The notes beneath the pieces were generated by a model that was given only the letters and a program-made list of their open reading frames with translations, did no database searches and had not been told where the DNA came from. Both the position numbers and the translations under genes were made by a program. DNA of 63,377 bases, counting the filler, from Lenisia limosa (lineage: Eukaryota; Protista; Breviatea): the NCBI GenBank assembly GCA_001655205.1. It is 10 parts of 10 records of this genome, joined end to end, with 100 filler letters (N's around TTAATTAATTAA, not from the genome) between each part and the next. Parts side by side here need not be neighbours in the genome. Positions count along the whole stretch, not along the records: positions 29,600 to 36,912 come from LPNZ01004266.1; 9 more parts are not named here. One strand, 5' to 3'. Shown here in pieces: positions 119 through 37,012 of the stretch; position 1 is the first letter of the stretch, and every line of letters begins with the position of its first letter.

Positions 119-2650
119 AACGAAGACGCTTCTTTCCCTGTTCTTCCATCAAACAGCGCCGTTTTCAGTGACACGCAATTCTATGTGGCAGAAAAGCATA
201 ACGAGCTAAGGGACTTCCTTATTTCAGTGGGAGGGGGCAACCAGCATTTTTTGCTCATTTTCAAATCATTACATTAATTTTACGAAAACATTTCTTTTCT
301 GATCTTTAAGGCGATTCGAAGAGGAAAGGGCAAATTGGCCTCGGACCCGGATAAATCGGATTACATTGTAACGAGATTCTGGAACCACCCGGTATGTCGA
401 TGTCTGGCATAGATGACGCTGTTTAGGATGTTGATGAGCGGGAATTGAACGGCCAAAACAAAATGATATTTGATGCAATGGTGAAGAACCCATCTGTTCG
501 TCTTGTTAGCCCACTTTGGATTTATGAATGCTTTAACGAGAATGGCATTGTAAGTCTTGCTTTGGTTGGTCGAGAGTTTTAACTCTCTTCAGGTTGATTA
601 TAAGCGTAATGTTTTACACGCACCAGCTCGTTCAGTTCTTGGGGTACCAGACTTGGCCGGAAAGGTTGGTAAACGCCAGTTGTTTGTTTTGATAGTTTTA
701 TTCCTTGTGTGCTAATTTGTGCAGGAAGTTTCTGTGACAAGGTACCTGGAGCCTCTTAGGGGGCATATCAAGCACCTTTGTAAGTACCTCCAGGCTTCAT
801 TTAAGGCTGACCTCAGGTATGAGTGGTGTACAGTTACTATTATCATAATAAAACTGCATTAACACCCCACAGAGCTTCATGTAACATTCTGGTATGCTTT
901 GAACACGCTGGGGAGAAGTACAACAAGAAGGATGATTGGGAACTTGAGGTAGGTCTTTGGTCTTCTCACTTAGTCCTAGGTTGTCAACCACCAATGGCTT
1001 GAAATGTGCTATGCAACATGGAGTCTGGTGGACTGTGTTGATTATCGCACTCCTGGAAAGTTTGAGGGAAAGTTTCTCTCATATTCTTTGATAGTCATTG
1101 GAACTTTATCCTTATTATTATAGGGATTTAGAGAACTTACAGTTCCCCCCGTATTGGGAACAGATTTCAGATATTGAGGCCCAAAAAAGGGAAAAGAAGG
1201 AGCAAAAAGCAGCAGAAGAAAAGATGAGAATAGAAAAGAAGAAAGAGGAGGCCTTAAAGAAAGAAGAGAAGAAGAAGAAGCTTGAGGAGGAGAAGAAAAA
1301 GAAAGAAGAAGAGAAGAAGAAAAAGGAGGAAGAAAGAAAGAAAAAGGAGGAAGAAAAGAAGAGGAAAGAGGAGGAGAAGAAGAAAGAAGAAGAGAAGAAG
1401 ATATTAGCGGAAGAGAAAAAGAAAAAAGAGGATGAAGAGAAGAAGAAGAAAGAGGAAGGGAAGAGGAGGAAAGAGGAAGAGTCCAGGAAGACAAAAGAGG
1501 AAGAAATGAGAAAGAAGGTGCAAGATGTCAAGAAACAACAGGAAGAGAAGATGGTGGAAGAGAAGATGGTGGAAGAGAAGACGTTGAAGCGACGAAGTGA
1601 TACTGAATCAACAAAGCCGGTAGGCATAGCGTTTCCTCATTTTGACTCTTTAGAATAAACTGTTGAAGAGCAGCTATAAATTTGTTATGTCAGCCAATTT
1701 AACAGACAAACCTCTAAGCATTAAGTTCCTTCAGCTGTTCGATGGTTAGTGCCGCAAAAAAGATTTAACCTGAATAGGAGATGGAAAGGAACCGACCCAC
1801 CTTGTCATGCTGAACTTGAAGAGAACGCAGAAACTGTTATCTGGTCTAGGTTTGCATTGGGGTTTACCTCTCTTGAGGCTTTGTGTGAGGCACAAATTAT
1901 TGGTCTTTTGTTACTAGAATTAACCTTGTCTTACTTTGGGCAGCCAAAGGAGTGTGGATTTTGAAGTGGCAATACTGGTGGGTGGGGGCTCTGAACACAA
2001 ACTAGGCAGTAATTTTCTGACCTTTTTTTTTTTAGCAAAGATTGTATAAGCAATGACACCCTTTTGGAATGTCTGAACTATGAATGGACTGGAGATGAGA
2101 TTTTCAACAACAAGGTGAGTTCCATTGATTTTTAGATCCAAACCAAAAAGCAAATTTGAAAGGCTACATGATATTGCAATGACACAATTGAACGATTGCT
2201 GACGATTGATAGGTGTGGTCAGGAGCACCGAGGTATTGGCGTCAGCAAGTTGCAAGAGGCAAACCCGCGTTTAAGGGTCTCAGAATCGCCATTCATGGCA
2301 AAACTGTACCCCCCACTGAGGTTGGCATTTTTGACAAAGAATTTGTACTACAGAAGATAGCTGACCTTTTAGTCAATGACAAAGATTATCAAGGAAGGTT
2401 GTGGGACCAATGTCAATGTGGATGATCCCGATATTGATTGGGTGATTACTCCCGGTTCAGGCGTGGCTTCTGACGTAAGCTGTTCTCTCAGCACTATTTC
2501 TGCCTTCATTTGCCCTGTTTCTCACCTCTACTCCAACAGGTCGAAAAAGAGTACCGTAGAAGGGCCATTACCATTGTCCCGGATGCCACGTTTCTCAATC
2601 TTCTTGGCCAGCCACTTCTCCCTGAATGTCAAAAACTGCTGAATAGATAA
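119..2650 (+). CDS. Multi-BRCT-domain protein (at least 4 BRCT domains, two pairs separated by a Lys/Glu-rich linker); 5' end lies before the window; multi-exon
   Basis: Hand-spliced exons give BRCT WxxxC-type signatures VSPLWIYECF (~505-535), VVNHQWLEMCYATW (~973-1025) and WILKWQYW-KDCIS (~1953-2055), then APRYWRQQ..PAFKGLRIAIHG (~2230-2310). KE-rich exon is ORF 1098..1658. Stop TAA at 2648-2650. Resembles DNA-damage scaffold families (Rtt107/Brc1/PTIP-like); orthology not established. Confidence 0.75.
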
Positions 2651-2769
2651 CGTGTTAATTCTCAGCACTTTGGGGGATGTTTTGAAATGGTGGTCTGATT
2701 TATGATGCATTTTTTATCAATGGAAGCTGGAGAAATGTATATTATCCGCATACACGTACACCACATTAA

Positions 2770-5259
2770 CTAGTAGTCGCACCCAGTGAGATTTTTGATT
2801 AACTCCACAAAGACATCAATGCCTTCTGTTACTGCGCTTTTGTGGACGAACTCGTCTTCAGCTGAATGGATTAATAATAGCGGCAGAATGTTGAACATTG
2901 AAATCAGATGCAAAAAGTACCACCCACCGTGGAGGCGAACAGCAGTGTTTGGGAGGTAAGTGAAGCCGAAAGCATGGCACCCCATGTGCCTCAGGTATCT
3001 CGCGTCAGTGGATGCAGGGAAAATACGGGGCTCGAATTGAACACCCCTGATTATAATGTTGGGTATGTTCGGGAAGGAACATACCTCGATTCAAGAGCCG
3101 TTGTAATGGCTTTGTAAATGGCGGTTTCTGAATAATGAAAGACTGCAAACTGAAGCATATTGTATATTCCAAGTTTTGCCCACCCTGGGAGGAAGGCCGA
3201 CTGAGAATCGGCTTTTGGATGTATTCGAATTTCACACCACACTACAAAAGTCAGCCATGGTCTTTATATGGTGGTGTGACTACTTTCTTGGCAAGGGATG
3301 CGATTAACTCTTCGAATTCTTCATTTTCAATGGATGGTGTCACGCGGAAGTCCACTGTAACACTCAGTTCAGAGGGGACAACGTTGGGCTGAGAGCCGCT
3401 AAAGGATGAGCACTATGTGGTGGGGACAACGTTGGGCTAAGAGCCGCTAAAGGATGAGCACTTGGTGGGGGGCTTCTTTTCTCGGCGTCTTACCACGATT
3501 GGCTGAGCTTACCCTTGCATCATGTTGATGTTGACAGTTGTGACGTCACCTAACTTGGCGCTTTCTGTCTCAATCTTGCCCTTGTTCTCTGCCCTGCACT
3601 TGTTAGCCTTTGTTAAGTTGCTTGACTAACTTGAAAACACAACAGCACTCACCCTTGCTTCTGCTTCTGCTTCTAATGTCTTCTATCCCAATGCAAGAAA
3701 CTACCCTCCCCCAACACTTCTACCTCTCCCCTTTTCACATACCTCATTTTTTGGATTTCATTGATCAAGTCTTGTACTTTTTCCATTGCTGTATCCTCAA
3801 CAAACATTGAGCCGTGACCGGGGTTTCCAGGAGCAATAAACTACAGAGTTATGGCTTATTTTGGTTGCTCAAAGATGGATGCGATATTAAAATAACATGT
3901 ATCGGGCCCATCAATTCTATTAAAAGGAAGACGGCCTACTTTGATCCAGTAAGGTGAACGCTCTCCATAAAAAAGACCCAATTGCGCCGTAGGGTCAGCC
4001 AATCCCTCTTGAATGTCGTAAGTACAAGTAACATATCCGTCCATCCTATTTGAATTCCTCAAACCGTCAATGAAAGTGCCAATATTCAGTTCCTTGAACT
4101 CGGGTGCCTTCATGAAAGTCTCCCACCCATTATGGCCGCCAATTTCTTCATCAGGGGCGAATGCGATCACAATGTTTCTAAAGCAATCAGAGAATAGAAC
4201 TAGGTGAAAGGAACTTGTTTATATTTATACCCCTAGAATAGAATACATCTTTCTGTTTTTACCGGCGTTGGGTATGAAAAAGAACTGTGAATATTTTTTT
4301 TTACAAAATTGTTTTCTATTTCAGCACAAAACTATTGAGCAACCACAGCTACACTTATGTATGCCCATTATACCTCTTTGGAGTCCATCCCTCACGGAGA
4401 AGACGGGCCACTGCTTCCACATGGTGAATGGCACAAATCTAGAATTACTAATTAGAACGGAGAAAAGAATAATAAGAGGGTGATAGGAATTTGGGGAAGT
4501 GGGTAACTCTGAGTTATTCCAACCTTCATATCTTGAGTACCTCTTCCGAAGATATTGCCTATAGTGTGAATAATTATCGTCAAACAACAAACCTTCTTCA
4601 TCCATGTGCGCTGAAAATGGATCATAAGTCCATGTTTGTCCCGTCACAGGCACCTACGTCATAAAAGAAAAGCAAACCGCAAAGGGTGATAAAAAGAAAA
4701 TGACTTGGTTTCAACCAACCCACAAACCACATCCATGTGAGAGTTCAAGCAGAGGGCGGGAAGGTTTGGATCACACCCCTCAATTTTCACAATGCCCATT
4801 GAAGCCCCATTCGCAGTCTATGTGAGTAAGAAAAAGAATTATTATTAAATATGAACTAGTTGAACAAAAGTGGTCAACATGTTGAGTTCATATATTACAT
4901 ATGATATCTATTTCTCGTGCCTTACTTTATACGTCAAAAGAGTGAGGTTGTGTGCTTCAACATAATCTTCAAGGAAGCTCAACACAACATCATAGTTGGT
5001 TTTGGGCTGCATAGACTCCTAAAGCATATGACTGTGAAAATTTTTTATGCCTGCCCCATGGAGCCAAAAGGGGAATCGATTCGGCTTAACAATTATCCCC
5101 TGTAAAGAGATTCTGACAAGCGTCCCGACCCACTTTGATTCGAACGTAGTGTCTGAAGGCGGCAACGGCAAATCCAGGGTCACTTGGTGCTCCGAAGTTG
5201 ATCTTGTTCCCAAGCATCGTACGAAGCCCGCGCTTTAATCCTGAGATAACTGCACTCAT
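2770..5259 (-). CDS. ACY1: Aminoacylase-1 (M20A metallopeptidase family), multi-exon
   Basis: Exons read FRHYVRIK-SMQPKTNY, GCDPNLPALCLNSHMDV, WTYDPFSAHMDEEG, APDEEIGG..EGLADP..FYGERSPYW, LGDVTTVNINMMQGGSQPNVVP..DFRVTP and GFTYLPNTAVRLH..DEFV, all collinear with ACY1 motifs. Stop TAG at 2770-2772; ATG inferred at 5259. Confidence 0.92.
3374..3462. repeat. Two 41-bp direct repeats (period 48) covering a 3' splice site of ACY1
   Basis: ggggacaacgttgggct(g/a)agagccgctaaaggatgagcact at 3374-3414 and 3422-3462, one mismatch. Confidence 0.95.
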
Positions 5260-5836
5260 TTTGTTTTGGGTACAACAACAGTTTAATTCGGGAACGGGGA
5301 GTTGGGGGGGTGGGGGAGTCTGTCTTTCTTTTGTTTTTTTTTTGGTTCGCGCCAAGTCCACTCACCACAGAGAAAGGCAGAGAAGCAGAGAATGGAAAAG
5401 GGAGCAGGCAGGAAAGCAAAAAGCATAGAATGAGAAAGCAATCAAAACCAATCCCCAAAATGATCCCCAAAAGGCAAGTTCCTGCTCATCACTCTATAAG
5501 CTTTTCCTATCTTCTTTCTATTCTCAGCGTGTATCACATTTTTGTTTCGTAGCTTTAATATTCTGTATTACTCCACGACTCCAAATCCTTTGGGATTCTC
5601 AGCAACAGTGAACAAAGCTGTCACAGGGTCTCAGGAATCAGGAGACCAACCACCAAGCTGCTCAAGCCCCCATTACACTTTCAGGTCCTTCTTGGTTAGA
5701 TTGACGTTTCTAAAAAGTGAGGAATTATTAAATATGTTGGTTTCCCTTTTTTCACCAGCTGCAGTTTTGTCGTATATAATCTTTTTCATTTGTGATGTGA
5801 AATTTCAGACTCTTTACTTGATTGCCTAGATAAACA

Positions 5837-8800
5837 ATGAAGCTCTGGGTACTTCTTTCCCTTTTAGCCTTTTCGGTCTCGGTATTTGGAGGTGGTGGTT
5901 ATGACTGGCGGGTGAAGAGTCCGCATGCCCATTCAGGTAAGTCCTTCCTAAGTCCTCGGTTGATCCCATTCTTCTTGCTTTTTTGGAGTTACTTTCTCAC
6001 TCCCATACAGTTCGTAGTACTTTGATAAATAAACTCTTGGAATTCTATTTACAAATCCCTTATAGAGGTGATATTAATTATTGGTAGTGTGTCCAAAAAT
6101 CATGACCATTTTGTGTAGATGTGCATATCATATGATATAGCATATATATCGCCCGATATAGACTGGTACATTATACTATATACATGACATTCACATTTCA
6201 GACAATAGTCGTGTGAATTCGCATCTTGAACCAGAAGGCCTTTTTATACGGGATACAAAAAGCAAAGAAGCCCTCGTTCAAATCCTTATTGGAGGGAAAA
6301 GGTACGACTGAAGCTGTCTAACGTTTAGTATTGTTAAATACCAAAAGCTTCCTTCCGGTCATATGGGGAAGATACATGATGCTGAAACACGTGAGGTTGT
6401 ATCTCCATGTCCAGGAGACACCCACACCTTTGCCATGGAACAGCTCCTTGGAGGTTTGTACTCTTTCTTCTAATGATGCCTAGTTTTCTCTCGTCCCGAA
6501 CACCGCTACGTTATTACTTCGATACCGGACTGCTTGAAATCGTAAGGGCCCTTGGTGCTAACGTTTCAGTGCCGACAGTTTCTTCACCCTTGTCGTAACA
6601 ATGGATTTCAACGGAAATGTTGAAATTTTAAGACAAGGTCGTTCATTACGATTCATTGTGGTTGACAAGGACGGAAAGACGAGAAGCGTCTTGTACAACA
6701 ATCTTAAAGTCTATGATGCTGAAAGTTTGACACACAAATGAAGGTGATTACCGTTCAGAAACCATTCTCAAGAGTGAAATGGCAGTTGATGGCAAAAGCC
6801 TTCTTTTCAAAGTTCTCGAAGAGGGAAAACTTCCTGTTGGCCTTTACTCATTGGAACCTTCTAACTCTGTAGATCACAATAGACCCGGTTATTACCGACT
6901 CACCACACATTATCGGAAGAAAAAGCGGTACGATGAACACTCCGTTCTAATTGGAAACCAGGGTACAACGCGGAGTTTGGTGTATCAATGACAACAATCA
7001 AGCGCATTGGCCAAAATGACGTGAGTACTTAGTTTGTTATTATGTGTGACCCTTGTAGATTTTGGCAGTAGCTGCTCTCAATGATGGGGAGCAAGGTTTG
7101 ACTCATTGTTTAAAGACTTATTCTTAGATATGAACGAACCATACCATGGAACAGGAAACTTGTATCTTCTGGATAGCGTGTTCAGCACTGGCCACAACCC
7201 TCCAGGACATAACTCAGAAAACATCTGCTCCCTCTCAGATATTGAAGTCCAATATTGTCGGGCTGGATCCAATATCATGGCGGTAGGCATTGTTTTGGTC
7301 AAACTAGTCTAACAAATGTTGCAGTTGGACGATTACGATGGTGATGGAGTTGACGAGCTCTTTGTTTCCAATTCAGGTTTGCTTTGAAAAATTCTTGTCA
7401 TGATGATGCAATAAATAAGAAACATGAAACTAAGAGCCATCTAAACCATCACGTTTTGAACCGGTTCCTCTACGCTAAACAATATAGTCACAAAATCTGC
7501 CGCAATGTTTATGTCTTTGGACAACTTCAACGAGGCAATTCTCTTGGATCTGTCAGATTCTGACAGAAGCAACGCAAATGGATTTGGATGTGGGTTATTG
7601 AGACATTTATTAACAATTTAGCGAGTGCCCTTCAGGTAGACTGCACAGGAAATGGGAAGAAGGACCTTTTGGTATCCTCTCCTGCTCATTGTGGAGCTGT
7701 TTATGGCTTTGTAAGATCTGTGGAAATTGAGCATTTTTCTCATTTTAATAGGAAAATAGAGCCTATTCGAATCTTATTATTGACCAAACAACGAAAGATC
7801 CCAGTAATCATGTTTCAACAAATAGGTAAGAGTTGTCTGTCACATATGTTTCAGTATTGAGTCAGTTGTCCTGAGTGTTACCAAAACAACCAGCCTGAGT
7901 GAATTGGTATGGTGTCTCCTAACTAACATAGTAGATTATGTATATTACATGTGATACACCAAGTCAAAATACCTTCAACTGGATTGTAATGTCCCAAGAA
8001 ACAGAATCTGAAGAGTTAGCTCTTGACCATTTCACAGATGCAGATGGGAAGTGATTGATGTTTTTGAATCTCAAGCAGACTGCTCATCAGAGTTCCAGAT
8101 CTTTCCAAAGCCAATTGTTCGAATGGAAAACTCATGACGTTTTAGACTTTGTATGCTACACAGTTGTACGCTCTTGGAATAATACATGAACATACCTTCC
8201 GGTACACATCGCAAGGTAATTTATGTTAAAGAGAGATTTTTTATGTACGTCTTCACATTTTTAGATTACAAGTCTTTATCCGGCACAACTGAGATTAAAA
8301 AATTTAAACGGTTCAGCTTTGCTGACCTGATAATGTAAATAAACCAGCATTTAAGTTTACCATAAAGTGGTTCAACGGTGACGCTTACTGAACAAGAGGA
8401 GTCGAAAAGTAAAGGAATTCAAGCCAAGTTCACTTTGTGTTGGAATTTGAACAACTCACGCTTTAGCTCCAGAGTATCTTCCCTACTCTACCTACAACAA
8501 TGCGATTCTGTGTAAGCTAGGTCGACTTGTTGACACGTACAGCCTCCACAAGTTGCTACACTCGCCTCCAAGGACACGCATTAGCTGCTCTCATCACAAC
8601 AAATTACTTTCAATCTTTTGCAATCTCAGAGTAGGATACCCTCTGAATTTGACAACAACAGACCATTGCACAGAGATAGACCAAATAGCGCAGAAGAGGT
8701 TAGTGACAGAATAGTGATCAATTTCGATTTTTTGGAACCTAATTGAGCATTTCAATTTTTATCATTTTGAAAAATCATTATTAGTACAAAACTGGAACGG

Positions 8801-29599: not shown

Positions 29600-29648
29600 G
29601 TGTTGCCGCCTCCATAAACTGCTCAAAACTGTAGGGGTTATATGGCAT

Positions 29649-29870
29649 GTGCAGAGTTGTAAGGCAAATGATTGGGTGAATTAATATTATACTATAATCT
29701 AATATCTCTTATAAGCGTGATGGTGTGGACAGATTTGGCTTGATGTAACCTTGTTTTAAGGGCTTCACTTCGGTTCGAAAGAGACCAGTAAAATATCGAT
29801 AACTTTCGAATATTTATCGAGAAATCCAGTCTTGTATCGAATCAAAGTGAAGCCCTTCCTATTTCTCATC
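29649..29870 (+). repeat. Dispersed repeat family B (~130-200 bp, unclassified); here interrupted by a hAT-MITE. Other copies ~1-35, 30590-30650(-), 33359-33420, 34070-34162, 37681-37805, 44765-44878, 51490-51620(-), 58529-58583, 62144-62195(-)
   Basis: Shared core gttgtaaggcaaa..ttgggtgaatta..aatatctc..taagcgtgatggtgtggacggcttcggccagatacaaccttgttttttatttctcattgcta. Confidence 0.85.
29758..29857. mobile_element. hAT-type MITE family A copy, nested in repeat B
   Basis: TIR aagggcttcacttcggttcg..tcaaagtgaagccctt; flanks cttgtttt/cctatttc (5/8). Confidence 0.85.
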
Positions 29871-30118
29871 TCTACGTATCATTAAAGCAGGTCTCCAAAC
29901 CAGAATTCATGTATTTTTTTGATTCTCTTAACATAAAATATCTTGACTCATATTGCTGGGTGCCCTGAGGCCTCAAAAATACTGCATTTATCGCAATGAT
30001 GTATTTATATATTTCCCTAGACTGCTCATGTATATTAATTCATTTGTTAAAAAATTGTTAACGATAAATCTTCGATAAATATCAATATTTTATCGTCTCT
30101 TTCAGTCCGTTCATCAGC

Positions 30119-30200
30119 AAAACAAACAAAACTCGGGCCAGTCGCTTTAACAGCAAAACAAACAAAGCCCTGGCCAGACGCTTCAACAACATCTCATCCC
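30119..30200 (+). repeat. Dispersed repeat family C (two tandem copies here; also ~48190-48242(-), 57120-57172, 62538-62590)
   Basis: Shared aaaacaaacaaagccc(t/a)ggccagtcgcttt..catcccatc motif. Confidence 0.75.
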
Positions 30201-31943
30201 GCAGACTGTGGGGGGTCTATATCCATTGAAGCTGACAGAAGCTCCTCAACACCAAATTGAATGTCATTGAAGGGCGAGCTCGCTGGGGAGTAAAATTGGA
30301 AAATTTATGAAATAAAAAAAAACCAAATCAACTCTGTTGGCTGACAAAACACAAAATCGAAGATTTATGATACAAAACAAAACAAACAAAAAAAAACAGC
30401 TCGTTTGGCTTTAAACCATTCAAATATCGATGGTTTTCGAGGGTTTATCGAGAAATTCAGTCTTTTTTCGACCGAAGTGAAGCCCAAGACATAAAGATAT
30501 GAAACGTGGACATCTTCTGTATTACCGATTAGCAGAGCCCAAAATCTGTAAAGATAAGAAATAAAACAAGGATGTATCTGACCGAAACCATCCACACCAT
30601 CACAGTTTTAAGAAATACTGGATTAACGCAATCATTTGCAACACAGCTTTCTGCCTACCTCCCCATACCAAACTAACAAAACAATGGCGTTGGAAAATTA
30701 TAAGGACCATAATATGACTTAATATAAGATTCCAATGATTTATATCAGCAGTAATGAACCTTCAAGTTTCAACGATGATGTGGACGGAATTTCCTTGTTT
30801 TATTGTATTTATTATCTCTTCATATTCTTGATGTCAAGACAATAAAGAATCGCACCAATACAGGCAATAGCTTCACAGTTTGTCATCCCATCATGGTCAT
30901 AGCCAACCCCCTTATCAAAATAATCAACAGCAACCACCCCAACCATCAGCATCAATTGGACTGGTCCTATACGAGTGGCTCCCTCCATTTGGTTGTTGGT
31001 TTTGGGTGAGCTGGTTGTTGTGTTGATTGAATCGCCCACCCTTTGAGGAGTTCGTGTTTCCCTGTATATAGCATTAGTTAAGATCAGTTCATAGATATAC
31101 AAGGGGGAAGGCTCTGGTTGCCCCCTACACTTACCATGAGGGAGACTTTTGGATTGGTAAAACTCTCAGATACGCCTTTTGGCAAAAATAGATATTTCTT
31201 TATTGATGTATACCTGTATTACTCTGTGTCACTCATATATATTCGTTTTCTACGCTTGCATTCCATTTTTTTGGAGTGTTTTTATTGTAGATATTTGCAC
31301 ATCAGAACCCCCAGGTTTTTTATATTATTATTACGTACGCGCGCCGCGCCGTAACGGAAAGAACGGAATTGCCATCGCCTGATTCTTTTTCTTTTTGACT
31401 CCTTTTGCTTTGCTTTTTATTATTTAATGACGATATTATAGAGAAAAAAACGATATAGTCTTTCTTTTATTTTGGTGAAGTTTTCTTTCGCGTATCTTAC
31501 CACAGTCAAGCGTTTTTTTGGAACCAATAAGCAAGACTAATTAGTAATTAGTGGCGCAATGCGGTGAGTTCGGGGAATGTCACTGATAACCAATTTACGC
31601 TTTTCGTTGTCATGTTCAGTGACTCCTTTCTTGGCATGTTTGAGGGCGCGTAATGGTGATATTGTTGCCTTCATCACAAGGAAATGCTTGATATACATCA
31701 ATTGGCTCGCTGTTATTGGGCATTGTGTCTGTATTCTCTCTCCTTTCATTTTCAATGTTCAAGAAGAGTTTCAGAAATGGAGCTACTTGACAGTTATTCC
31801 CTTCTTTCCAAATATATTTTGACGTTTCAGCCATCTGGATGACCCTAAACGGGCACGGAAGGGCTATGCCTCGGAGTTCCCAACACCCTCTGAGGTTTGT
31901 CCAAGAAGATACTAACTATATCCACATATGTAATTATTTTACC

Positions 31944-32040
31944 GACAAGTCTCAATGATACATTAATACGCTGATACTCTCGAACCGAACCCTCGTGTTA
32001 TCTACATTCATCATTTCGACTCGAAAGTCGTTCATATGAT
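31944..32040 (+). repeat. Dispersed repeat family D (also ~9010-9075 and 13617-13650 in integrin introns, 33100-33215(-), 33848-33925, 63135-63280(-))
   Basis: Shared gacaagtctcaatgatac..ctgatac..gaaccctcgtgttatct..catcatttcgact. Confidence 0.8.
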
Positions 32041-32085
32041 ATGTACGTGTTGTATACATACAGCCACGCCTATTAAAGTTGTAAG

Positions 32086-32184
32086 TAGGGCTTCACTTCG
32101 GTTCGAACAAAGACTGGATTTCTCGATTATATTCGAAAATTATCGATAGTTTAGCTGTATTGTTCGAAGCGAAGTGAAGCCCTA
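32086..32184. mobile_element. hAT-type MITE family A copy
   Basis: tagggcttcacttcggttcgaa..ttcgaagcgaagtgaagcccta; flanks gttgtaag/gttgggac (5/8). Confidence 0.88.
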
Positions 32185-32469
32185 GTTGGGACGGGAGGAA
32201 TAATGGCTCGGCTTGAGAATACCATACATGCTTAATACTTAATACCTTTATCATTTTGGTACAAATAGTACTTGGGATGTATTCCATCAACTTACCATCT
32301 ATTATAAACCTGATGGCATGGATGGCAGACACTAATTTTGTTTTCTCATCGCCACTTTTCTAGAGTTTATTTTTTTGCGGTATGATGTCAATTTGATGGA
32401 AGAATAGCCTTAACTGCAACTTTATTATCTGGTTTTTTTTGTTCCGTATATTTTCCAATTTTACCCCCC

Positions 32470-32503
32470 CTTAAGATTATTCGGTTCGTGATTAGTACCT
32501 TTT
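32470..32503 (-). repeat. Dispersed repeat family G (also 47161-47228 and ~57903-57975)
   Basis: Shared aaaggtactaatc(t/a)cgaaccgaataatct motif in three places. Confidence 0.7.
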
Positions 32504-32550
32504 CGCCAATATTCTTCAAAGACAATTCCTTCGTTTTACCCCCCCTCCCA

Positions 32551-35500
32551 GGCTCACAGAAAACGTCAGAGTCACCCCACGAAATACTCCAAATCGAGCT
32601 CGTCACATTCGGAACCCAATGTACCTTCAGCGAATTCATCTATCAATGATTTGAACCATTCAGCTTCATCAAATTCGTCAGTCAGTCATTTGAGGATAGA
32701 AGCCAACCATTCAGCTTCACCGAATTCATCAGCCAATCATATGAGGCCTTCAGCTAACCAATGCCCCTCTCAAATTGGTCCAGCCAACCTGTCTCATAAT
32801 GCTATGAATGCTGTGTCTTTACCCCGTGATCAGTATGATCACGTTGATGATTCCTCTCTTCATCATCAGACCAATGAATGTCATAATGGTGATCATATTG
32901 ATAATCACGAGCATCTCTCAACAAGGACGCAAGAAACCTCTCAGCACGGCCCTATCGCATCAACAGAACCGCACTCAGCCCCTCAGCAACAAGTGCAGCC
33001 GGCGGCCGTCCACACACATCCTCAATCTCAGCCGCAGCCGCAACAAGAACAGCAGTTTGTTGGGGAAAGTCTTACCATATCCACAAATGATATGACTGAC
33101 TTTTGAGTCGAAATGGTGATTGAAGATTATACGAATGTTCACCCCGAGTGTATCAGAGATTCATTGAATCTGTTCGGTCAATTATCACAGGAGTGGATAA
33201 TGAGATACATATGATATATAATTGCGTTCAAAATGATAGTAAATGTCCTTAATTGAAATAATGGGTGTAATAAAAAGACAGTAATGAGTATTAAGCGTGT
33301 TTTTTTATCATAAATCTGAGATGCACGCTGGGGAGGCACCTTGATGGAAAGTGCAAATTCAATATCTCTCATAAGCGTGATGGTGTGGAATGCTTCGGCC
33401 AGATAAAACCTTTTTTATTTCTTACCTGCTGTCATGTTCATAGATATCTTGTATCTAATAATCAAAGATGAAATAGTAATGTATATTTTTTATGTATAAT
33501 TTTCGGTCTTGCTTTGATTTTCTAGGTGTTTCATCCATTTGGCTGGAGACGCCAAATTGGATTTCCGTATTTCAGGAGATGTTGTGGGGAGTTTCAAAGA
33601 TCATGGTGGATTCTCCAATTGCCCAAGTTGCTCAGTATGTGGGGTAGGGCTTCACTTCGGTTCGAAGAAAGACTGAATATCTCGATAAAACCTCGAAAGC
33701 TTTCGATATTTTCTCAGCCTTTTTCCGACCGGAGTGAAGCCCTGGTGTAGGGTCTCGTTCGCTTTTTGTACGATTGAAAGAGACGGGTGGAATTGAAATT
33801 AATGTATCAAATCACTTTTTGGATCATTATTACATGTGTGAACTATCGTTTTCCACGCAGTGATATGATAACTCATATCTATTCGTATGATAATTGACTG
33901 ACAAGTCTCAATGATACTCTGATATAATATGTTCCACTTACCAAATTTAGAAGACGAGCGAAGGGATACTGCATTATATTTACCAGATACCAATACCTGT
34001 TTGTGACATGATGTTCAAGGTATGCTGGAGAGGCACATAGAAATCTTTGTGCAGATATTTTTAAGGAAATGTTTGGGTGAATTAATATTATCATATTATA
34101 CTTCAACCCAATATCTCCATAAGCGTGATTTGTGGACGAGACTACCTTGTTTTATTTCTCATCTTAATAAATGCTGATATGAAGTGGGCTTCCCTATGAT
34201 CACAATTAAGACTGAAAATCTCGATATATCTCGATGTTTCTTTCTATTTGTGAATTCATCTCAATCCACAGATCACAATCTTCAACAATGGAACCTTTTT
34301 TTATGAGGAGAGACCGGGCAAGGACCATGGCAACCGAATTCTCAAAGCTGGAACAAGGTCTGGTGACATTAATCTGGGGCGAGGTTGATTGTACCATAAT
34401 CTAGGTACAAATATCGATATTGCATTTTTTGCTTAAGTCATTGTTTTTCCTATTTCCTTAACTAATTCAGACACTACTTTGTTGATACAACGGAGTTTAT
34501 TGTTGAGAGGAATTATTTTAGAAGAAACAAAGTAGTTTTTGGTGTCCACATACAGGAGCTCTTCCATTGTATGATTAGTATGCTGGGACACAGAATAAGC
34601 TGTGTGCACAGAGTTGTTATGATAGTGAAAGTTACAGGGCCGTATATTAGGATAGGATTTACTATCCCAATTTAACCACGTTTTATTCTGTAGCTTCCGT
34701 TATCATATTAATTCTCTCATGTAAGGTTACTCGTCTCCTATCCCAACCCTCGTTTATCCTTCAGCCTTACAGCGAAACTTCCTCTGCGAAAAGGATCTCA
34801 TTACTTTCCTGAACTTGTGCTCTCATTATGATGGCCAGCTTTTTGGTAACCAACTTCAAAACATTTTGGTTTGCTGAGGGTTAGGAATGGGGCTTCACTT
34901 CGGTTCGACAAAATACTGAATTTCTCGATAAATCCTCGAAAACTATCGATATTTTCCTGCTCATTTTCGAACCGAAGTGAAGCCCTAGTTCTGAAACACT
35001 TAGAGGGAGATTGGTACAAGGGCTTCACTCTGGTCCGAAAAAGACCAGCATATCGATAGTTTTCGAGGTTTTAATAAGAAATTCAGTCTTTTTCTACCGA
35101 AGTGAAGCCCTGTCTTTGTATTTTCATTTTCAATAATCCGTCACTACTTTGAATCACTGTTTCTAGGCACATGGCCTTTTGCTGATCTCCTCAAAATTAA
35201 GCAAAGTATGCAGGGGCTCATGTATCATTGAGAGGTCAGGCTCAAAAACCATTCCAAATTGAAAAAGTCATCACAAAGGATTAACTTGTTATAACATTTA
35301 GTAACAATAAGATAATATACTTACAATAATCATATCATGGTATTTAATAAAAGTCTAGGAACACGAATAAAATGTTATGCCTACTTCACTTCGGGAAAAT
35401 ATGGATAGTTTTCGAGGTTTTATCGAGAAATTCAGTCTATTTTCTAACCGAAGTGAAGCCCTGGTAATGTCATAAAGAGCAAATAGTGGTGTTCTTTTCT

Positions 35501-36863
35501 GAGTCTGTTACTATTAAAAAGTAGTGCAAGTATTTTTTTGAGCATACCACGTAGTGTCAATAAATATCGATATTTACACGTTAGAGCTGAAAATGAAGCT
35601 TTATTTACGATCTTTTGAGTACTGTTTGTTGACTCTTTGTAGAAATACTGCACCGAACTGTTTTCCGCCTTCTTGGAGCAGTTTAAGGACGAAATCACCC
35701 TTGAAGAGGTACGTTTGAGTGAAAGAAAGACATCGAAAGCATGATGACTATTTCCCCATCATGATTTCATTCATCAGGATTTTACCCTTCAGGATTGCTT
35801 TTACCTATCAGGGTTGAGTTAAATAATGCGTAACTTCTTTAGAAGAATAAAACGAAGATTTTGGCTCAAACGACAATGACACTGAACGCTCTTCTGCGAA
35901 CCGAGCAAACGGTCCTTCCTGAAGCAGTCGTGGTATNNNNNNNNNNNNNNNNNNNNNNNNNNNNNNNNNNNNNNNNNNNNNNNNNNNNNNNNNNNNNNNN
36001 NNNNNNNNNNNNNNNNNNNNNNNNNNNNNNNNNNNNNNNNNNNNNNNNNNNNNNNNNNNNNNNNNNNNNNNNNNNNNGAATCCCATGGAATTTTGTGGAA
36101 ATTTGAAGAAATTTATGGGATTCCCAAATAAATTAAGGGAATCCCAAGTTGATGCGCCGCAGTAGAGGGTGTGAAAGGAGGAAAGGAGGTAAGGGAAGGG
36201 GGGGGGGGNNNNNNNNNNNNNNNNNNNNNNNNNNNNNNNNNNNNNNNNNNNNNNNNNNNNNNNNNNNNNNNNNNNNNNNNNNNNNNNNNNNNNNNNNNNN
36301 NNNNNNNNNNNNNNNNNNNNNNNNNNNNNNNNNGAGAGTTCTCTTTTGTTTAAACTGAACGTGGGCCCGGTTATTTCTTATTTTGGTATTACCTTTGTGT
36401 TTGGCTATTGTCTAATTTTTTAGGTCATCCTGGTGCTCTATATCCTCTCTGATGGGCCCAAGAAAATCAAGCGTTTGGAGGGGAGAACATTTATGGACGA
36501 TCCCACAGGTAGTATTTCACTTCGGTTCGAAAAAATATCGATATTTTTCGAGGATTTATCGAGAAATTCTTATACCGAAGTGAAGCCCTACCCACAGGAG
36601 ATATACTTCATGTTATTGATCCACATTATGTAACTTTTGTATCAAAATGAAGTAAGTAGAAGGTGTCATTTCCTGTAAAAATAATCGAAAAGTGTCATGA
36701 TGATACTGCCTTTTTTTTTCAAATACTGCAGCAACATTTGATTATCACAGGCCAACTCGGGAAAGAAGTGAAGGAAGATACCCTGGAACTGGGGCTGAAT
36801 GTCTTTGCACAACAGAATATCATTTCACGATTCCCAGCAGCCCTTATTCGGACCTTCTGTCAG
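32551..36863 (+). CDS. Unidentified multi-exon protein-coding gene (His/Gln/Ser-rich exon followed by many short exons); may be more than one gene
   Basis: ORF 32651..33106 plus AG/GT-bounded open exons, e.g. 33526-33625, 35643-35708, 36424-36508, 36598-36629, 36732-36863. No family recognised. Confidence 0.45.
33645..33744. mobile_element. hAT-type MITE family A copy
   Basis: tagggcttcacttcgg..ggagtgaagccctg; flanks atgtgggg/gtgtaggg (6/8). Confidence 0.88.
34888..34987. mobile_element. hAT-type MITE family A copy
   Basis: tggggcttcacttcggttcg..cgaaccgaagtgaagcccta; flanks gttaggaa/gttctgaa (6/8). Confidence 0.9.
35018..35112. mobile_element. hAT-type MITE family A copy
   Basis: aagggcttcactctgg..ccgaagtgaagccctg; TSD not clear. 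Confidence 0.85.
35382..35463. mobile_element. hAT-type MITE family A copy, internally deleted
   Basis: tacttcacttcgg..ccgaagtgaagccctg; flanks gttatgcc/gtaatgtc (6/8). Confidence 0.8.
36510..36590. mobile_element. hAT-type MITE family A copy with perfect 8-bp TSD, coinciding with a predicted intron (36509-36597)
   Basis: cccacagg (36502-36509) + tagtatttcacttcggttcg..ccgaagtgaagcccta + cccacagg (36591-36598). Confidence 0.92.
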
Positions 36864-37012
36864 GTTTGTTTGAAAACCTATGGTTTTGAATTTGATTTTT
36901 TCTTTTAGAACTNNNNNNNNNNNNNNNNNNNNNNNNNNNNNNNNNNNNNNNNNNNNTTAATTAATTAANNNNNNNNNNNNNNNNNNNNNNNNNNNNNNNN
37001 NNNNNNNNNNNN

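Follow-up and report, generated by a model that had tools for sequence, protein, structure and literature searches.

A MITE that may have become an intron on insertion

A MITE of 81 nt at 36510-36590, sited between two copies of CCCACAGG, may have become an intron in the act of inserting into an exon. We give a probability of about 0.5 to the reading, built on the sequence, that this is a one-off MITE-born intron spliced at 36509/36597. Positions count along the window, the whole 63,377-nt stretch of DNA that was analysed, and most of the evidence comes from the 7.3-kb piece at 29600-36912. In the proposed mechanism, a non-autonomous Ac/hAT-like MITE would have entered CCCACAGG within a coding exon, on the + strand, of a single-copy, lineage-specific gene. 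With a target ending in AGG and an element starting with T, insertion would set G against T at the left junction and retain CAG|G in the right duplicate, so that an AGG-ending target and a T-initial element would together yield a GT donor and a CAG|G acceptor. The spliceosome would then cut out the 89 nt at 36509-36597 (phase 1), no more and no less than the element and 8 nt, and the ancestral mRNA would be regained; a single exon of 117 nt would have been split into one of 85 nt and a micro-exon of 32 nt. What the sequence shows of this is an element with its TSD and TIRs, a family to which it belongs, a GT/AG register, a restored frame and a coding signature to either side; expression of the gene and use of sites 36509 and 36597 are what we infer. 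The features of the junction are:

36502-36509, +, left TSD CCCACAGG, whose final G would open the proposed intron
36509-36597, +, proposed MITE-born intron (candidate), 89 nt, GTAGTA...CCCACAG, equal to element (81) plus TSD (8)
36510-36590, unstranded, hAT-like MITE of 81 nt, a shortened copy with two internal deletions
36510-36525, +, left TIR TAGTATTTCACTTCGG, diverged from the family consensus TAGGGCTTCACTTCGG
36575-36590, +, right TIR CCGAAGTGAAGCCCTA, which includes an alternative donor GTGAAG at 36580
36591-36598, +, right TSD CCCACAGG, with the proposed acceptor CAG (36595-36597) and, at 36598, the G that would open the next exon

The proposed splice sites coincide with the TSD/TIR junctions

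The original prediction placed a duplicated target around the MITE, and CCCACAGG does occur at 36502-36509 and 36591-36598 and nowhere else in the window: these are exactly two occurrences against 0.05 expected by chance, a count reached in 0 of 100 shuffles. At 8/8 positions the duplication is perfect, giving the 8-bp TSD by which hAT elements are recognised. We do not take this perfection as a sign of selection, as a divergence of about 9% still leaves 8/8 in some 20% of cases. The composition of the splice sites was also as predicted, with the donor GT (36509-36510) made of the last G of the TSD and the first T of the TIR, and the acceptor CAG (36595-36597) supplied by the right TSD.

Deleting 36509-36597 (89 nt) gave back the exact empty site ..GATCCCACAG|GAGATA.., also readable as ..GATCCCACAGGAGATA.., and joined open frames, in agreement with the earlier claim. 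Left unspliced, the 89-nt insert causes the frameshift that had been expected, and read-through meets a stop at 36634-36636. Nor did the site offer a donor before insertion: the reconstructed empty site lacks a GT between 36474 and 36612, and the donor thus arose through the insertion. The pair 36509/36597 is the sole GT..AG pair that restores the ancestral sequence, and it sits exactly at the TSD/TIR junctions. An introner draws its splice sites from the element and/or the TSD, with an intron equal to element plus TSD, and the same sum is found here (89 = 81 + 8). Insertion of the MITE into an older intron can be ruled out, because zero intron sequence lies outside element plus TSD and the ancestral site, as noted, had no GT of its own in 36474-36612.

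The element belongs to an abundant hAT-like family

Nine copies of the MITE family, that at 36510-36590 included, lie in the 7.3-kb piece in both orientations. Members are 81-100 nt long, non-coding and multi-copy, as MITEs are in size and copy number. The other copies, placed by alignment with the 36510-36590 element, are:

29758-29857, MITE copy
32086-32184, MITE copy
33645-33744, MITE copy
34888-34987, MITE copy
35018-35112, MITE copy
35379-35463, MITE copy
30421-30487, truncated MITE copy
34183-34225+, degenerate MITE copy

The consensus termini of the family are TAGGGCTTCAC...GTGAAGCCCTA, and its ends, TAGGGCTTCACTTCGG / CCGAAGTGAAGCCCTA, are short TIRs of the YARNG type used to recognise hAT elements. 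Ac/Ds elements have an 8-bp TSD and the ends C/TAGGGATGAAA ... TTTCATCCCTA, i.e. C/TAGGG...CCCTA (PMC3260210). With the element bounded in the same way, four of six other local copies have 8-mers on their two sides that share 5-6 of 8 positions, which indicates that the family generates 8-bp target-site duplications. On account of this 8-bp TSD and the Ac-like TAGGG...CCCTA ends we call the family hAT-like, an assignment that appears reasonable from sequence features. Measured against the target preference nTnnnnAn, the five left-flank copies showing a TSD have T at position 2 in 4/5 and A at position 7 in 2/5, and the TSD CCCACAGG of the 36510-36590 copy departs from it at both the T and the A positions. 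That copy has 91% identity to the local family consensus, its left end has diverged to TAGTA, and three of its seven mismatches form the change GGC>TAT at intron positions +5 to +7.

Sequencing reads came from one DNA run (X1) and one RNA run (X2) of the same study. To the 3.5 kb at 33400-36912, 6,280 contigs of the DNA run align; MITE-bearing bins total 23,000-119,000 in depth as against about 17-45 for the unique parts of that region, or some 1,000 times the unique depth or more. These depths imply a family of roughly thousands of copies and single-copy exons. A hAT transposase that could be the autonomous partner was absent from the 29600-36912 piece, and the MITE sequence matched nothing in metagenome contigs or viral contigs and was not found as a text string in papers.

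The flanks have the signature of coding exons

Around the element we assembled the following gene model:

34767-35935, +, upstream part of the same putative gene, a four-exon frame-consistent chain of 100 codons
34767-34868, 35167-35205, 35643-35708 and 35843-35935+, +, exons of this chain, with donors GTTTGC, GTATGC and GTACGT
36424-36508, +, putative upstream exon, 85 nt, ending in phase 1, with a T-rich tract and AG 36422-36423 before it
36598-36629, +, putative micro-exon, 32 nt, GDILHVIDPHY, followed by donor GTAACT at 36630
36630-36731, +, ordinary intron, 102 nt, GTAACT...T-run...CTGCAG
36732-36863, +, putative downstream exon, 44 codons, GC 0.47, followed by donor GTTTGT at 36864

The end of the downstream exon, earlier given as 36864, had to be corrected to 36863, since the donor GTTTGT begins at 36864. 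The open frame of the upstream exon reads VILVLYILSDGPKKIKRLEGRTFMDDPT; once 36509-36597 is removed, the joined frame continues as ..EGRTFMDDPTGDILHVIDPHY|QHLIITGQLGK.., and in full as VILVLYILSDGPKKIKRLEGRTFMDDPTGDILHVIDPHY|QHLIITGQLGKEV...TFCQ. Besides the pair 36509/36597, this frame relies on an acceptor ahead of 36424, on GTAACT (36630) and GTTTGT (36864) as donors, and on 36731 as acceptor. An alternative in-phase donor, GTTATT at 36612, would shorten the micro-exon to 14 nt.

In a piece of about 37% GC, with N runs at 35938-36077 and 36209-36333, the exons at 36424-36508 and 36732-36863 form blocks of GC 0.47-0.49 against AT-rich introns and stretches of 0.23-0.37, and both are preceded by T-rich tracts ending in YAG. 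The upstream exon (GC 0.49, against 0.35 in the intron before it) has a DNA depth of about 18 and is single-copy. Across 183 putative codons, GC at positions 1/2/3 is 0.52/0.29/0.50 (chi2 31.2, p 2e-5), and periodicity persists at p ~0.01 in either half of the putative CDS, as opposed to p 0.55 for 238 intron triplets. The micro-exon is poorer (GC 0.28, GC3 0/10), with 7/8 of its G/C bases at codon position 1; from this position-1 bias of the 32 nt in the ancestral frame, the coding frame seems to cross the insertion site.

Homology searches returned no relatives. Pfam gave no domain in eight exon peptides or eight ORFs of 29600-36912; phmmer with the 44-residue exon 36732-36863 against 1.84 billion representatives gave repeat-protein artefacts only; word-index searches were blank for the ORF of that exon, the ORF of the first exon plus MITE, and a minus-strand ORF; and exon homologues were absent from a tblastn-confirmed metagenome contig scan, the ESM Atlas and PDB. 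As no homologue was found, it is composition and frame statistics that speak for coding. On these grounds we think it quite probable that a real gene has its exons in the flanks; it would be lineage-specific or belong to an unsampled lineage.

A possible chance register, and the rival reading of an unrescued insertion

For a T...A element, the exact GT..AG register arises at an 8-bp target with AGG at its end, GGT at its start or AGGT anywhere within it. Such targets make up 4-5% of random octamers (AGG-ending ones alone 1-1.6%), and at least one qualifying copy is expected among the seven scorable copies of the piece with a chance of 24-30%. With thousands of copies, some would show the register by chance at such a rate; as this copy was, moreover, picked from many in the original prediction, the register by itself is weak evidence. 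The weight lies in its combination with coding flanks that share one frame.

These figures favour the reading that fares best among the alternatives, although we hold it to be unlikely: the MITE would have broken a dispensable or decaying lineage-specific gene, or landed in untranslated flanks, and its GT..AG register would be a coincidence among thousands of copies. Such an unrescued insertion would suit a region crowded with repeats (nine MITE copies and other families), the blank homology and Pfam results across the 7.3-kb piece, and an ORF that spans just 45 codons across the site once the MITE is removed. It would also suit the RNA run, a small metatranscriptome with zero depth on all unique parts of 33400-36912, where its few contigs touch repeats only. 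Yet the sequence before and after the element has codon periodicity in one and the same frame, the introns have none, the exons are single-copy, and at least seven consecutive putative exons have intact frames and good splice signals.

A scan for xxxxxAGG-type TSDs, suggested earlier for all family copies, covered the local ones; the CCCACAGG copy qualifies and the other local TSDs do not. That a single such copy would be visible proved correct, in that one of nine local copies is clearly exonic. An introner family has many copies as introns in unrelated genes, and in this piece one copy of nine fits. The more general rule, by which any CAGG target would give a perfect intron, stands for the core dinucleotides and falls short beyond them. 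A predicted RNA hairpin hides the 5' splice site, and there are further routes in frame. We consider it improbable that the whole MITE family, with its thousands of copies, symmetric ends and either orientation, is a passive introner that brings no splice sites of its own, is exactly spliced at 4-5% of exonic targets and has seeded tens to hundreds of introns, with GGC>TAT as a post-insertion adaptation opening the TIR hairpin.

Splice signals and competing routes

The candidate intron at 36509-36597 has a donor, CAG|GTAGTA, that matches CAG|GTAAGT at about 6/9 positions, much as neighbouring donors do at 6-7/9 (hand count); lacking G at +5, it is a mediocre donor. The acceptor has the pyrimidine-rich CCCTACCCACAG, and 89 nt falls inside the local intron span of 45-134 nt. 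The intron RNA is predicted to fold as a TIR hairpin (-28.1 kcal/mol, z -5.6) in which donor positions +1 to +4 and exon base -1 are paired, with an unpaired probability of about 0. With GGC>TAT at +5 to +7, the predicted stem is about 14 kcal/mol weaker and +5 and +6 are freed, a modelled effect that would be compatible with adaptation and equally with neutral decay.

In all, 110 GT/GC..AG combinations leave exons 36424-36508 and 36732-36863 in frame, and the gene could be expressed with the MITE processed through other splice sites, a reading we rate somewhat below that of an unrescued insertion. Three routes come into question. In route (a), donor 36509 would be joined to the old acceptor 36731, with 32 nt skipped and the frame shifted, which would amount to splice-site donation; the original prediction had noted that this route is open in frame, and it is. 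Route (b) would read 70 nt of the MITE up to GTGAAG at 36580 and splice to 36731, a partial exonisation in which 24 residues replace 11. Route (c) takes in nearby alternatives such as AG 36600 or GT 36512.

All are open in frame, and (b) preserves the frame of exon 36732-36863. The skipped 32-nt segment is, besides, intron-like in its GC of 0.28 and GC3 of 0/10, unlike the neighbouring exons, and a micro-exon of 14-32 nt between short introns would be hard to define. However, the shifted frame that (a) imposes on exon 36732-36863 has a GC3 of 0.32 (14/44 codons, hand count) and encodes an R/P/S/T-rich peptide, while in (b) GTGAAG after GAA is a weaker donor than CAG|GTAGTA (5/9 vs 6/9, hand match to CAG|GTAAGT). 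The enrichment of the 32 nt for G/C at position 1 of the ancestral frame also speaks against these routes, and only 36509/36597 restores the ancestral protein.

A precise, IES-like excision of DNA between the TSD copies in somatic nuclei would fit the geometry, as ciliate IESs, including MITE-derived ones, leave one repeat copy in the cases that PMC9942856 describes, but we think it most improbable, because contigs of the DNA run (records 6 and 7) join the element to both flanks at a depth close to that of the single-copy flanks, the joint 36508^36598 is absent among the DNA joints listed, and GT-AG introns of about 100 nt and the composition are unlike ciliate genes.

Neighbouring copies, other repeats and the assembly

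Several other features of the piece were recorded. The MITE copy at 33645-33744 (TSD ATGTGGGG / GTGTAGGG) starts where an open frame ends, the stop being the element's own TAG. Removing it together with its TSD (108 nt, a multiple of 3) lengthens that frame to 91 codons (33480-33860); the exact GT..AG register is absent, and the downstream ORF has no clear codon periodicity. This copy more likely inserted just past a donor, TAT|GTGGGG, than represents a second exonic copy.

Two further copies, 34888-34987 and 35018-35112, make up about two-thirds of the putative intron 34869-35166, the first of them starting 19 nt 3' of the predicted donor GTTTGC. The copy at 34882-34993 matched the Rfam model MIR319 (RF03483, plant) over the full model on both strands, at 42.1 bits (E 1e-6), with weaker matches to MIR2599 and MIR8706; its right arm is like miR319 at about 14/22 positions. 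We rejected this identity: 42.1 bits is below the gathering score of 54, and the hairpin probably accounts for the match.

A second repeat family (..GGGTGAATTAATATTAT.., ..AATATCTCTNATAAGCGTGATGGTGTGGA..) is present three times, at 29657-29756, 33356-33416 and 34058-34130, with DNA depths of 550-7,750. The stretch between the N gaps, 36078-36208, is a repeated element: its DNA depth is about 1,450, where unique sequence has about 20-40. Inside it are GGGAATCCCA/GGGATTCCCA repeats, and its last bases, at the gap border, are a G-run. Two copies of a 34-nt direct repeat (..GACAAGTCTCAATGATAC..), with 82% identity and 1,956 nt apart, lie at 31935-31968 and 33891-33924; they could be the termini of another small element, or copies of one.

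Contig record 6 of the DNA run (413 nt) spans the N run at 36209-36333 and places 79 nt, not 125, between 36208 and 36334, from which we take the N run to be a sized placeholder. Record 7 (851 nt) extends 478 nt past 36912, so that the gene continues beyond the piece. The longest ORF of the piece, 32492-33103 (+), has 204 codons, is rich in S/N/H/Q with a Q/P-rich C-terminus, contains a 51-nt tandem duplication (32654-32755) and has no Pfam match; we take it for the probable final exon of another, lineage-specific gene next to this one.

Comparison with known systems

That transposons of the introner type with TSD-derived splice sites are already established, as the original prediction asserted, agrees with the literature (PMC9860276, PMC11282704). 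Introners, among them families with TIRs and TSDs, owe one splice site, or the pair, to the TSD or to the place where they insert (PMC9860276; review PMC11282704). Those of Aureococcus have an 8-bp TSD, and Florenciella families carry neither splice site (PMC9860276). Known hosts include Micromonas, Aureococcus, Symbiodinium, Florenciella and others (Huff et al. 2016, as relayed in PMC11282704; Gozashti et al. 2022, PMC9860276; Gozashti et al. 2025, PMC12130899), and a 2025 survey derives introners from about 80% of TE orders (PMC12130899). Introner-like elements of fungi (van der Burgt et al. 2012, as relayed in PMC12130899) likewise multiply, are intron-sized and create introns, whereas Ascomycete ILEs lack TIRs and TSDs (PMC9860276) and the 36510-36590 element has both. 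A hAT introner, or this MITE, was not named in any paper found, supplementary classifications being outside the scope of the search.

Like introners, the candidate at 36509-36597 is a short non-autonomous TIR element with a TSD in a coding exon, whose removal leaves the mRNA length unchanged, and as far as its sequence goes the locus would work like an introner insertion. Introner families, however, consist of many near-identical, transcript-backed introns in unrelated genes, and here one of nine copies is clearly exonic. The 36510-36590 copy is also unlike them in being diverged and deleted and in contributing just a T, with no evident splicing specialisation. Other local copies, such as the two in the putative intron 34869-35166, exemplify MITEs in pre-existing introns; 36509-36597, by contrast, leaves no older intron.

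Maize Ac/Ds resembles the MITE family in its 8-bp TSD, in the identity of the first five terminal bases and in having short non-autonomous derivatives; beyond TAGGG the family has no sequence similarity to Ac/Ds. The donor and acceptor by which Ds is spliced lie within its ends or close by, and removal is as a rule imprecise and alters the mRNA, whereas the register of 36509-36597 is exact and TSD-based. Wessler et al. in 1987 and Purugganan and Wessler in 1992 are said to have described Ds exon insertions spliced out of maize pre-mRNA, a classical case, and a Ds acting as an intron within an exon is a precedent for a hAT element in an exon.

In principle 36509-36597 adds nothing new: introns with TSD-derived splice sites, born from TEs of different superfamilies, are known from across the eukaryotes. 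If the junction is true, it would be a clean, single-event intron gain by a hAT-type MITE, with the ancestral sequence rebuilt to the base, and an unspecialised MITE would have become an intron merely by inserting at an AG|G proto-splice site. It would then also give a reason to count such introns genome-wide for this very abundant family.
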